A stretch of DNA of 63,396 nucleotides, counting the filler, from Olpidium bornovanus S191 (Eukaryota > Fungi > Olpidiomycota), in assembly GCA_017911155.1 (NCBI GenBank). It is 30 parts of 30 records of this genome, joined end to end, with 100 filler letters (N's around TTAATTAATTAA, not from the genome) between each part and the next. Parts side by side here need not be neighbours in the genome. Positions count along the whole stretch, not along the records: positions 38,370 to 41,687 come from JAEFCI010007172.1; 29 more parts are not named here. One strand, 5' to 3'. The translations under genes were made by a program, and so were the position numbers. The notes beneath the pieces were generated by a model that saw only the letters and a list, made by a program, of their open reading frames with translations, had not been told where the DNA came from and did no database searches. Each line of letters starts with the position of its first letter. Position 1 is the stretch's first letter. Positions 9,001 to 41,687 of the stretch are shown here, one piece after another.

Positions 9001-9208
9001 GGCCTCGACGCGAACGTCCTCTGCCCGTTCGCGGAAGAAGTCGGCCGTCGCGCCGGCGACACCGGGGCCAAAAAGCCGGGCGCGAGAAGACGCGCTCGGG
9101 ACGATTCCAAACGCGTTCGACTTAGACACGGACGAAGAAGACGTCGAGGCGGCCGCGGCGACGAAGGAAACACACCGGAAGCGCTCGACGATCTCGGTGG
9201 CCGACTAG
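6003..9208 (+). CDS. Sel1-like repeat (SLR) protein, multi-exon, 5' partial
   Basis: About 9-10 SLR motifs across GT-AG exons, e.g. AWNHLGRIYERGKGVPPDYQKAAECY, AQNCLGALYYYGRGVPKDPAEAVVWW, AQNNLGICYEEGTGVVKD, AFNLGALYETGSGVERNLDRAVGLY. The last exon ends ...STISVAD* at 9208. Confidence 0.9.
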
Positions 9209-11650: not shown

Positions 11651-13054
11651 GCCCACCCAGTTCCCCGTGTTGTCAGCGGAAAACGTTTATCACCAGAACC
11701 ATGAAGGGGTTGTCGTAAGTTGAAACGAGGNNNNNNNNNNNNNNNNNNNNNNNNNNNNNNNNNNNNNNNNNNNNTTAATTAATTAANNNNNNNNNNNNNN
11801 NNNNNNNNNNNNNNNNNNNNNNNNNNNNNNCGAAGGCACTTAAACATATTCGATAGAAAACTTAAACCAGCGCCGCTAGCTGGTCAGGCAAAAGTTTTTA
11901 AGTGCTATCAATAATATACCTGTGGTATTGGTGGCAATGCCGGCGCATGTTGGCCGGAAAAAAAATCTACTCTGCTTTGGCGGACACTGGGAATTGCCAA
12001 CAGGGGGCAAAAAAACGACGGCCTGTCGCAGAAAGCGTGGGGCGACTCCGCGAAACGGGGATGTCGGAAGGAGAGGGAGTTTCGCCAAGGATTTTTTTTG
12101 CGGGGTCCATTTTCGAGCGGAGTTATAAACGCGGGAAGGAGAAAGGGAGAGAGAAATCAGCGGGCGCGCGTCTTGTCGAGAGAAGCCCCGCGGAGTTCGG
12201 TTGCATTGGAAACGGGGGGGGAAGGGACAGGCTATTTTGGGCGTGTCGCGCACAAGGTCGGAAATTGGCACGATGGGTCCAGGGTGTAACCAAAAACGCG
12301 CGATCTCGGGGCCATAGCAACGAACACCCCCCCCCACCCCCCCACCCCCCCACCAAGCGAATACGCACACCTCGCCAACGCAAATTTTTCCTAGAGGAAC
12401 GAGTCACGTTGACTGGTCCCCGACCAGCCAGATTCTTGTCCTGAGGGAGGAAAATGTGGTGATGGTGGTGGGGGGATAGGCCGACTGCACGGCGGATCCG
12501 AAACGCAAACGCCTCCTCCCTCCATCTCCGCCTTAAGCCCGGAGCATTATACTTAGTGATACGAATACGGGAAATCCACTCAAAAGGGAGACTTCAGTTT
12601 CGATCAAATTTTCTCATGAAAGGCTAGAACCGAGCGGTTTAGAAACTGTACCTCTGAGCGTAGTCATCAACGGCCCGTCCACGCAGACCGTGGGGCAAAG
12701 GCAGCGCTTGGCTCTTATACCCTCGACATACGCCGTACTGCACCGGCGCCTTCCAAAAAACGCCCATCCCCCCGATCCCCCCCCCCCTACCCCGCTCCTT
12801 CCTTGAAAGCATAAACCTTCCCAGTAGACGTACACCGGTCAGAGGTCTCATACTAAGCCCGCTGACCGAACACGGCACATTCTAGTGGGGGCGGGAGCAA
12901 TCGTTGCGAAACAGCGCAATATGGCTTTGGTTGATTTGATTTGCAACGAAGATTCTTCCTATCTGCATATGAAAGAAATGCTCGCGGCAACGGACTCCCC
13001 CGTTCGACGGCAAGCGGAAAGAAAAGCAATGTCCCTCCCTCAAACATTTGGACC

Positions 13055-38369: not shown

Positions 38370-38475
38370 TTTTTTTTTGCGACGTGCGAATCTTCGTTTT
38401 TTGCGACGGGCGAGTCATTTTTTTTTCCGACGAGCGAATCTTCTTTTTTTTTGCAACGTGCGAATCTACTTTTTT
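38370..38475. repeat. About 4 degenerate copies of T(n)GCGACGTGCGAATCTTC
   Basis: Read directly at the contig start. Confidence 0.6.
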
Positions 38476-39361
38476 ATTGCGAGCACATGCCACGCTCCTT
38501 AGTGTCAACATTGTTGGTGCAACAACAAGCAAAAAGCAATGACTGCAGCGCACCAGTCTTTTATTATGTCGAGGAAATTGCTGTGGGCCGTAACAAGGGT
38601 CTGTTGAGCGTGGCATTTGTTGAGAACGAAGTTTACTATGAGATAATTCAGGGGAAAAGTGAACAAAAGCAAAACGAAGAAGACTGTACCTTGATAATTT
38701 CATCTCTCTGCAGCCGACGTTATTGCAAGAAGTGCAAAAAAGGTCAACTTGGAACAGGCACGGAAAAATGGAAGGAATTGGCTGAGTAAATATTTGTACC
38801 TCGTCCACTTTGGGGCGTTTCTGGTGTTTGGGATTTGCAGAAATTGGTTAACTCTGTTGGCTTGTTCCACCAGCCTGTAAGACGCGCAGGTTACGTACCA
38901 CAAGAGGTGTTTCAACATCGTCCTCCTCGGGCTTCCTCTTCTAGGATTGGGAGCACGTTGGCTTACAGCTGCTTGCAGCGCATTAGCGCGTTGCGCAGCT
39001 TTCTTACGTTCCCCCGTAGCAGAGTTGGTGCTGGCGAGCTGTATTGGACAACATTAGTATCCCGGCTTTAGACTGCCGCGGGCACGCGACGCGGAACGTT
39101 GACGCGCACCAGGCACAGTGCCCACGCGAACGAGAAGACTCACAAGCTCCAGCTCCCGCTCCAGTTCTTCTTTGGCCAGCTGGGCAATCTCCTTGTCTTC
39201 GCTCTTGGCGAGTTCGTGGAGGGCGCTGCGAAAGACGTCTTCGCCCCCTTCCCCGAACTTGGCGGTGAAGCGGGCCGGTCGCCCATTGGTTGGGAGACCG
39301 TCCTTGAGGACGCCGCCGCCAAAACCGCCGCGCACCCCATGCTTTTGTGAGCTGTAAGTGA

Positions 39362-39411
39362 CGGGGGAGTTTGTGAGCGGCGGGGGAGTTTGAGAGCGGC
39401 GGGGGAGTTTG
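39362..39411. repeat. 19-bp tandem repeat CGGGGGAGTTTG(T/A)GAGCGG x2.6
   Basis: Units start at 39362, 39381 and 39400. Confidence 0.85.
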
Positions 39412-39856
39412 GGGGCCTCCGATTTTTGACCACGTACAGAACGTTTCCCCCCCCCCCCCCCCCCGCCCCGGGCGCTTCGCCGTCACATACACCCCGCCCC
39501 CAACCCAAAACCCCGAAACCCCCAAAACGTCCGGGGAAGTTGAAGGAAAGTACAACGAAGCAGAGGACAAGACCGGACGCGAACCCCCATCTCCCGTCTG
39601 TCACGCTTTTCTTTCCCACCCCCGCTGGCAGAAGTTGCCCGGTATCTACCGCGCCACGCGCAAGGTGTGCATGACCACAGCTCCAGCGCCCGGCAAGCGA
39701 AGTCGAGGCAAGTGTGACGCGTCTTTTTGCATTTTGTTGGAAGGGGAAAAAACAGCGAAAGGGGCGGCCGCATGCTCTGCGGAGTATAGTGTTCGTGGTC
39801 AAGGCTGCAAAGGTGGCACTGGTGCACAGCCTTCTCTGGTCAGTTGTCCCGCAGTG

Positions 39857-40010
39857 CGGCAACCGGGAGGTTACTTGCCTTCGGTAACTCGGGTTGTCGA
39901 GTGTTGCGGCGCGGCAACTGGGAGGTTACTTGCCTTCGGTAAGTCTCGGGCTGTCGAGTGCTGCGGCGCGGCAACTTGGAGGTTACTCGGTGGTAACTCT
40001 CCGGTTTCCG
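39857..40010 (+). repeat. Three 55-57 bp tandem units, each folding into an irregular hairpin
   Basis: Units start at 39857, 39912 and 39969. Outer stem CGGCAAC(C/T) pairs with GGTTGTCG, GGCTGTCG or GGTTTCCG; inner stems GTTAC/GTAAC or ACTTGC/GTAAGT. Confidence 0.8.
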
Positions 40011-40363
40011 AGAGCTGCGGGCTGCTCCCGGTGGGCCGAAGGGGACCTGTGTCGCCTGGTACTGGGTACTGGTGCGCTTTTGTGGGGCTTGGAATTCTCT
40101 ACCGGTTTTCGGCCGGGTACCGCGCGTGGCTTTGCAAATGTTCTTTGCACTTTTGATCACCGCAAAGCCAGCCCGCCAAGTTGCCGCCGTGGAACTCTGT
40201 TAACTCATGGGGGCAGTGCGTCAACGGGCTGGTCTGGGGCGGGTTTGTCCTCTAGAGTATACTGCACTGCCCCTCCCTTGAATATGAACGATTTGGCTAA
40301 CCAGTACCGCTCTTCCCTGGGGTTTTTTTTACCCTCCGCGAGGGTTTTTTCCTAATAAAAAAA

Positions 40364-40433
40364 GGGAAGCTTGTCAAACACCTCCACGCGTTGCTTCCTG
40401 GGCAACGGTTCCTCAGGAACCGGCTAAGTTTGA
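40364..40433 (+). ncRNA. HDV-like (delta-like) self-cleaving ribozyme
   Basis: P1 GGGAAGC/GCUUCCU with G1.U wobble; P2 UCAAAC/GUUUGA; P3 ACC/GUU (central C.U mismatch); L3 UCCACGC; P1.1 CC/GG; GGGCAAC into P4 CGGUUCC-UCA-GGAACCG; J4/2 G-C-U-A-A with the catalytic C at 40424. Element lengths match the HDV antigenomic ribozyme. Confidence 0.85.
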
Positions 40434-41554
40434 TATTCCGACTCTGAGTAGCAAGTCGTGTCCTGGGACGCCGTGATCGTCCCAGTTCATTTTTCATTTT
40501 TTGCGCGCCGCAGAATTCTTTGTCTCATTTTTTATGCGAGATATCCTGGATTTTTTTTCTTTTTTGCGAGATCCCGGGAATTCACTCCGACGTTTTTCTT
40601 TCGGATTTCGCTGACCTTATTTTTTTGCTGGATATGGGGATTGTTCTGCTTTGCTTCTTTTTTTGCTGGATTTGCTGGGCTTACTCTCCATTTTTTTTAT
40701 TGGCAAGGCTTTTATTCACAGGGTGCTGCTTGGGTTCCCGGCTCGTCCAAGAGGGGTGTTCCGGCAGCCTGCACCAGAGCCCCCTTCCGTCACCGCAAGC
40801 GCCAGTTGGCACGTTGACCGCCGTGCAGGATCTAGCCAGCAATTGGCACCTTAACAGTGTGAAGGATCAGCTGCGGGACTTTGATCTGGCTTGGCGCGCC
40901 AACAGCCTTCTTCCGCCAATACGGGCATCATCGGTTAGGAAATTGACCACCGCGCAGGATTTAGCCAGCAAGCGATGCTTCAAATGTGTCCTATAGGTTC
41001 CGGAGAACGTTGCGGAGGGACCAACGGCGGTCCCGAACGCCTCGGGAAAGCCGGCAAGGCACGGTACACTGCAGTGCACCTTTCCCCTCACCCTGTTCGT
41101 GGAAAGGGTACCACCCGCTGCAGAAAGGACACTCGGGCACTCCTCTTCCTTTTGTAACGAGGAAATCGGAAGCTCAACTAGTGGTTGGCCGACGCGCGTG
41201 TTGCGAGTTGGCGGAGAGGGAAAGGCTTGCCCGGCGTTAGCCTGAACAAGTGCCGGTCAGGAGTACGCGCGGCGAGACGCTCCTCCGCACACACCCCCAC
41301 ATTTATCAGGAAGGGAAAGGAAAGGGAGCACCCCTGAGACAATTGGAAAGTCCCAACGTGACAACCCACGCAAACTCCACAACCCGGGCGCGCGCGGGGC
41401 TGAGGGTGGAACAGGTGGCGGTCGCCGGCAGGGATGACGGGGAAAAAAATAATAAAACTGCGAGAGTGGTGAAGGCGGAAAGACCACGTGCGGCCCCGAC
41501 CGGCGGGCAAGCGGGGCCGGTCGTGTCAATCCGCAAAGTACGAGCGGCGTGACG

Positions 41555-41575
41555 GTCACGTGACGGTCACGTGAC
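41555..41575. promoter_or_regulatory. Two tandem GTCACGTGAC sites (Cbf1/USF-type)
   Basis: GTGACG-GTCACGTGAC-G-GTCACGTGAC, 11-bp period. Confidence 0.5.
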
Positions 41576-41651
41576 AATCAAGGTAAGCTTCGTCCCCCTC
41601 CCGCACACGTTTGCGAAAAACGCCTCAATTGCATTGCGCCGTCGGAGGGGG

Positions 41652-41687
<36 letters not shown>

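Follow-up and report, generated by a model that had tools for sequence, protein, structure and literature searches.

The HDV-like ribozymes form a class with known members in viruses, bacteria, phages and many eukaryotes, to which the addition of one more family is unsurprising. Those at the 5' ends of the non-LTR retrotransposons R2, RTE and L1Tc share the fold described here, are likewise multi-copy and expressed, and are expected to free the RNA that follows them from a co-transcript (PMC3774820, PMC3185411). That a single ribozyme can be joined to unrelated downstream bodies is already known from R2 and the R2/R1 SIDEs (PMC3414825). In phage and bacterial DNA, theta ribozymes come immediately after tRNAs, whereas the ribozyme described here lies in intron-bearing eukaryotic DNA (PMC10879173). 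Retrozymes, which are non-autonomous, carry hammerhead ribozymes and involve circular RNA, resemble the present family in being non-coding repeats with a small self-cleaving ribozyme, but they need two ribozymes in direct repeats, and the locus examined here has one, of another class (PMC4918200).

The ribozyme was found in a window of 63,396 nucleotides from Olpidium bornovanus S191 (GCA_017911155.1), which consists of 30 parts of the genome joined by filler, and all positions given below count along this window. It lies on the + strand at 40364-40433, within a 3.3-kb piece (38370-41687, JAEFCI010007172.1) that has a GC content of 55% and in which all ORFs are of 240 aa or less. It is a true member of the HDV-like self-cleaving ribozyme class and belongs to an expressed, multi-copy family, in a eukaryote that has introns. 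On balance we think it probable, though by no means assured, that the locus holds an impaired copy of a dispersed, expressed HDV-like family which likely spread with non-LTR-type elements.

Structure of the ribozyme

Reading the sequence reveals each element of the nested double pseudoknot of the HDV type, in order, across 70 bases. P1 is a helix of 7 bp with 7/7 positions paired (GGGAAGC, 40364-40370, with GCUUCCU, 40393-40399) and has G40364·U40399 at the cleavage site; the predicted cut falls immediately 5' of G40364, between 40363 and 40364. A 3-nt J1/2 (UUG) leads to P2, in which UCAAAC (40374-40379) and GUUUGA (40428-40433) form six Watson-Crick pairs, extendable to 7 bp by a G40373·U40434 wobble that reaches 40434. 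P3 is formed by ACC (40380-40382) and GUU (40390-40392) around L3 (UCCACGC), and P1.1 by C40384 and C40385 with G40400 and G40401. J1/4 (GCAAC) is followed by the P4 hairpin at 40406-40422 (CGGUUCC-UCA-GGAACCG), a variable peripheral helix of 7 bp (40406-40412 with 40416-40422) with the loop UCA. J4/2 (GCUAA) contains C40424, the presumed catalytic cytosine of the GGCUAA motif, which is equivalent to HDV C75/C76 and aligns with the corresponding position of both Rfam models described below. P1 and P4 were also recovered in the MFE fold.

The helices listed by the first-pass annotation were all found at these coordinates, and the mismatch that it had named as the sole defect, C40381·U40391 in the middle of P3, was the one found on re-reading. 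The class is characterised by a P3 of 3 bp closing an L3 of 7-8 nt; the 40364-40433 copy departs from this, and no other register gives it three P3 pairs.

Searches with Rfam models gave two matches running end to end. The best was to RF02682 (HDV-F-prausnitzii) at 40364-40435 with 34.4 bits and an E value of 6e-4, followed by RF00094 (HDV) at 40362-40437 with 30.1 bits and an E value of 0.11. Both models align at the expected coordinates, and both scores fall below the gathering scores (44 for RF02682 and 50 for RF00094). The core letters UCCACGC, GGGCAAC and GGCUAA align to the consensus of each model, the C·U pair is flagged in both, and neither model scores P2 or P1.1. Over both strands of 38370-41687 this was the single HDV-like match, and at E values up to 10 none to another ribozyme family was obtained. 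A structure-only descriptor, comprising the helices and the CC/GG pairing of P1.1, was also run on 300 dinucleotide-shuffled versions of the piece and matched 4 of them, so that the helices alone are weak evidence.

A family of expressed copies

Contigs of the public run X1 were aligned to the piece at 85% identity or more, a threshold that places copies of lower identity outside the count, and all statements about the family rest on the contigs of this one run. Run X1 looks like RNA, because in its contigs the GT..AG intron at 38599-38713 is missing and the match to the genome ends at a GTAAGC donor. Besides the contig of the locus itself, at least 22 contigs share a block that starts at about 40357/40361 and extends to 40410, 40414 or 40433; beyond it their flanks differ from each other and are unlike the window. 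Together with the Rfam alignment and the helices, this recurrence supports the call of an HDV-like self-cleaving ribozyme made by the first-pass annotation.

Differences between the copies were reported in two places. At 40391, where the U of our copy breaks the middle P3 pair, G is read in 22/22 of the other contigs aligned, which indicates that P3 is intact, as ACC/GGU, in the consensus of the family. G accounts for 827.3 of the 935.8 units of depth at this position; the remaining 108.5 units belong to the contig of this locus, so the P3 defect appears private to the 40364-40433 copy, which was the sole mutated copy seen among those aligned from run X1. The second site of variation is the P4 loop, where other copies have 2-nt insertions or a 1-nt deletion at 40411-40416. 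Across P4 the depth falls from 936 to 354 to 184 and many alignments end, meaning that copies are no longer alignable there. Retention of the core together with a freely varying P4 is the mark of a constrained, functional HDV-like ribozyme, and the family is accordingly a genuine one.

Outside run X1, a family-specific 28-mer had no match in public genome, viral and metagenome contig collections, and no other copies emerged from exact look-up of 10 ORFs, spurious ones over the ribozyme and leader among them, or from protein searches with these. The ribozyme sequence was not found in the published literature. Three raw RNA runs with the same species label (X13, X16 and X22) gave no reads anywhere on the piece.

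Predicted activity

The family consensus ribozyme is probably active. In comprehensive mutagenesis the 3-bp P3 of HDV and CPEB3 proved "highly sensitive to individual mutations" (PMC9901934), and because a P3 of this length tolerates single changes poorly, the G-to-U change at 40391 probably makes the 40364-40433 copy slow or inactive. The J1/2 is 3 nt long, and a short J1/2 favours fast cleavage in HDV-like ribozymes (PMC4908430).

A further element may bear on folding before cleavage. The sequence CUCUUCCC at 40310-40317 (+ strand) is complementary to the 5' strand of P1, and in the MFE fold of 40290-40500 it pairs with 40364-40370 and displaces P1. It is therefore a possible anti-P1 element, and the model suggests that it could provide a competing pairing in the uncut co-transcript.

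Transcripts on either side of the cleavage site

The region before the ribozyme is transcribed from the + strand. A spliced RNA with exons at 38503-38598, 38714 to about 38785 and from 39478 onward was seen at a contig depth of 20-35, and the transcribed stretch 39478-40363 belongs to it. Its intron at 38599-38713 has GT..AG ends and a pyrimidine tract. One contig connects about 38784 directly with about 39477; the ends of this junction are non-canonical, and it lies beside a masked C-run. A 23-nt C-run occupies 39447-39469. Several repeats lie in this region. Just before the first exon, 38370-38482 holds 4.5 copies of a T-run-led 24-nt unit, TTTTTTTTTGCGACGTGCGAATCTC; a 19-nt unit, CGGGGGAGTTTGAGAGCGG, is repeated 2.6 times at 39362-39411, and a 57-nt unit is repeated 2.4 times with a 92% match at 39856-39987, both of them, like the 23-nt C-run, inside the transcribed region. 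A protein-like 93-aa ORF on the minus strand (39054-39335), which ends at GTGAGT, has no match in Pfam or PDB, and contig depth is zero from 38808 to 39337.

Sequence inspection and a terminator-like scan identified a composite motif at 40331-40363 that runs up to the cut site. It consists of a hairpin at 40331-40345 (ACCCTC-CGC-GAGGGT), T6, CC and an A-rich run, TAATAAAAAAA, which ends in A7 (40357-40363) exactly at the cut. In 7 of the other contigs, CCCGTCGAGGGGTTTTTTCCCCAGGAAAAG and TTGTCCTCTCAAGGGGTTCTTTTCCCCGAA are read directly before the shared block, with the elements in the same order as in 40331-40363; the consensus of their loose ends is GAGGGG-TTTTTT-CCCC-AGGAAAAG and AAGGGG-TTCTTTT-CCCC-GAA. 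Up to the cut, these seven thus carry a GAGGGG-T-run-CCCC-purine motif like 40340-40363, and in one further copy the upstream flank is unrelated, though A-rich at its end. Sharing of the motif by seven contigs suggests that, for some of the copies, the repeat starts about 35-45 nt before the cut. Such sharing would be unexpected among independent insertions with their start at the cut, except under site-specific insertion or where one unit lies behind another. The possibility of two related units arranged head to tail in the piece was examined and rejected: 38370-40363 and 40434-41687 have no significant similarity beyond T-run repeats.

Downstream of the ribozyme, one 3064-nt contig with a depth of 108.5 covers 40361-41582 without a mismatch. 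It then leaves the genome at a 5' splice site, AAG|GTAAGC (41582/41583), and continues into CGACCATGCCGAAG, which is absent from the piece. The exon reached from the 41583 donor lies outside the piece and begins with ACCATGCCGAAGAGACCGCCGAAGGGC. Positions 40434-41582 of the + strand therefore form a transcribed, non-coding, single-copy leader that behaves as a 1.2-kb first exon spliced to an exon opening with ATG. In run X1 the contig depth is 20 upstream of the ribozyme site and 108.5 downstream. The ends of contigs at 40361/40388 say nothing about RNA ends because a de Bruijn graph branches at shared words; unlike them, the fivefold step in depth at the site is suggestive.

The leader has some features of its own. 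Thirty nt past the ribozyme, 40463-40485 holds a GC-rich hairpin of 8 bp (CTGGGACG...CGTCCCAG) and, after it, a T-rich stretch, mirroring the hairpin and T-run that precede the ribozyme. Looser T6-9 GCGA/GCTGG repeat units occur at 40490-40700, and the palindromic CGTGACGGTCA is repeated 2.5 times at 41548-41575. A tandem repeat scan also found that the piece ends in a run of A36 (41652-41687, + strand), about 70 nt inside the intron used in RNA. This run is preceded by a CCCCCTC...GAGGGGG inverted repeat, whose stem was seen in a chance alignment to mir-320. It may be a poly(A) tail left by a retroposed unit, or else a homopolymer of the intron at which the assembly broke. Since the A36 run closes the piece, there is no sequence past it in which a target-site duplication could lie.

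Origin and possible role

The first-pass annotation proposed that a retroelement or a retrozyme-like RNA has its 5' end at the cleavage between 40363 and 40364, and the surroundings of the ribozyme do not bear this out. Unlike R2, RTE and L1Tc, the locus has no RT/EN ORF downstream, where the longest ORF is of 158 aa, and no shared body, as no other contig of run X1 aligns to 40434-41582 at 85% identity or more (a level at which older copies are missed). Ten ORFs of the piece gave no Pfam match and the most protein-like of its ORFs no match in PDB. The downstream RNA is instead a leader spliced to a coding exon, and several copies share sequence 5' of the cut site, which again sets the family apart from these elements. 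The retrozyme alternative fails on the number of ribozymes, since a retrozyme has two flanking the unit in direct repeat and a single one is present in the 3.3 kb, whichever strand of 38370-41687 is considered. A retroelement origin of the ribozyme family as such is nevertheless a reasonable guess.

The mechanism that we favour can be set out as follows. RNA of the family consensus would fold into the nested double pseudoknot, with P1, P1.1 and P4 in one stack and P2 and P3 in the other. The cytosine of GGCUAA (C40424 in our copy) would take part in cleaving the RNA immediately before the first G of P1, and the cut, by analogy with the class, would release the downstream RNA with a 5'-OH from the upstream transcript. 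In the 40364-40433 copy the change from G to U at 40391 would open the middle P3 pair, leaving it probably slow or dead. The family would most likely have been spread by non-LTR-type retroelements, or by short non-autonomous derivatives of these, for which it would serve as a portable module for 5' processing, an origin suggested by the known elements. At this locus the module would sit within a transcription unit of the + strand, at the head of the 1.2-kb non-coding exon, whose splicing partner is a coding exon.

An alternative is that the host has adopted the module and that no retroelement is involved today. The ribozyme and its upstream motif would then cut read-through or co-transcripts ahead of cellular leaders and so insulate the downstream mRNA. 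The single-copy, non-coding downstream region joined by splicing to an ATG-bearing exon fits this well, as do the separate spliced RNA upstream on the same strand and the rise in depth from 20 to 108.5 at the site. Maintenance of the core, and not of the flanks, at 22 or more expressed loci points the same way, and so does an upstream motif common to at least 8 copies. Against it, a cut would leave an mRNA with an uncapped 5'-OH end, the P3 defect argues against selection at this locus, and the divergence of the flanks may merely reflect several element subfamilies, among contigs that were limited to 85% identity or more. We consider this alternative unlikely. Its strongest form, in which the host keeps a cassette at 20 or more loci so that mRNA 5' ends before spliced leaders are made by an HDV-like ribozyme and not by transcription initiation, is improbable.

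More doubtful still is a role in making 3' ends, in which the cut would define the end of an upstream RNA terminating in the hairpin, U6, CC and A-rich sequence, in the manner of phage theta ribozymes, which trim RNA on their upstream side. It would account for an upstream motif that copies share as far as the cut and for an encoded A-run that stops exactly there, and it has a parallel in HDV-like ribozymes directly after tRNAs in phage contigs, both found here and described before (PMC10879173). Yet the piece contains no tRNA or known small RNA upstream of the ribozyme, one copy has an unrelated upstream flank, the motif is only loosely conserved, and the upstream side is the one of lower depth.

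Finally, a chance look-alike without function, as might be suspected from two Rfam scores below gathering, a descriptor match in 1.3% of shuffles and an imperfect P3, is contradicted by the contigs of run X1 and appears excluded, because the conserved core letters are present, the 6-bp P2, which lies outside Rfam model scoring, is perfect, and a block of 50-77 nt recurs in at least 22 differently flanked contigs, in which P3 is intact in 22/22 and the differences cluster in P4.

Under the reading that we favour, an impaired copy of a dispersed family, the locus offers a natural experiment: the catalytic core is kept in about 23 expressed copies, of which the one at 40364-40433 has lost a P3 pair and stands before a well-expressed spliced leader. 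Comparison of RNA 5' ends between intact and defective loci would reveal the effect of cleavage on the transcript that follows. Should the upstream motif prove to be shared, and the downstream sequences single-copy, across the genome, the family would be an example of a ribozyme module that serves outside classical retrotransposons.

Comparison with known HDV-like ribozymes

When the core pattern was loosened to CCTCCWCGCGGT-N7-GGGCAAC, 61 viral and 44 bacterial loci were retrieved, many of which are clean HDV-like ribozymes with ACC-UCCACGC-GGU, with chance matches among the rest. Phage contigs from about 30 IMG/VR loci, in addition to the locus L004, carry a pair of clean HDV-like ribozymes, 2.66-4.86 kb apart within tRNA arrays. 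In L004 the two lie on the minus strand (9121-9146 and 11783-11808), and one of these directly follows a tRNA-Thr (11825-11897), which is the known theta arrangement (PMC10879173). A theta-type, tRNA-linked context was ruled out for the locus studied here, as there is no tRNA in the piece.

The 40364-40433 sequence was aligned with 16 bacterial and phage HDV-like ribozymes (alignment A1). It keeps G59, G60, C61 and A64 of this alignment, the first three of which are nearly invariant, and the P1.1 pairing is invariant throughout. It also pairs in every helix except the middle of P3, its C·U being the sole unpaired P3 cell in the alignment; pairing counts for P1 and P2 in A1 are circular because the comparators were picked for pairing in these helices, a requirement that did not extend to P4.

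Among known systems, the minimal HDV-like ribozymes of bacteria and phages (RF02682, of the F. prausnitzii type, and theta; PMC10879173) come close in their core, as their P3/L3 block, ACC-UCCACGC-GGU, is identical to the family consensus and they also have GGGCAAC, GGCUAA or GGCUGA and a short P4, as found here. The sequences of P1, P2 and P4 of the 40364-40433 copy are unrelated to theirs. HDV itself (RF00094) and the CPEB3 ribozyme have the same double pseudoknot, with a G·U at the cut, UCCNCGC in L3, GGGCAAC in J1/4 and GGCUAA in J4/2. Compared with both, P4 of the 40364-40433 copy is much shorter and its P3 pair is broken. CPEB3 is present as a single conserved copy, whereas the family described here is multi-copy and encoded in genomic DNA.
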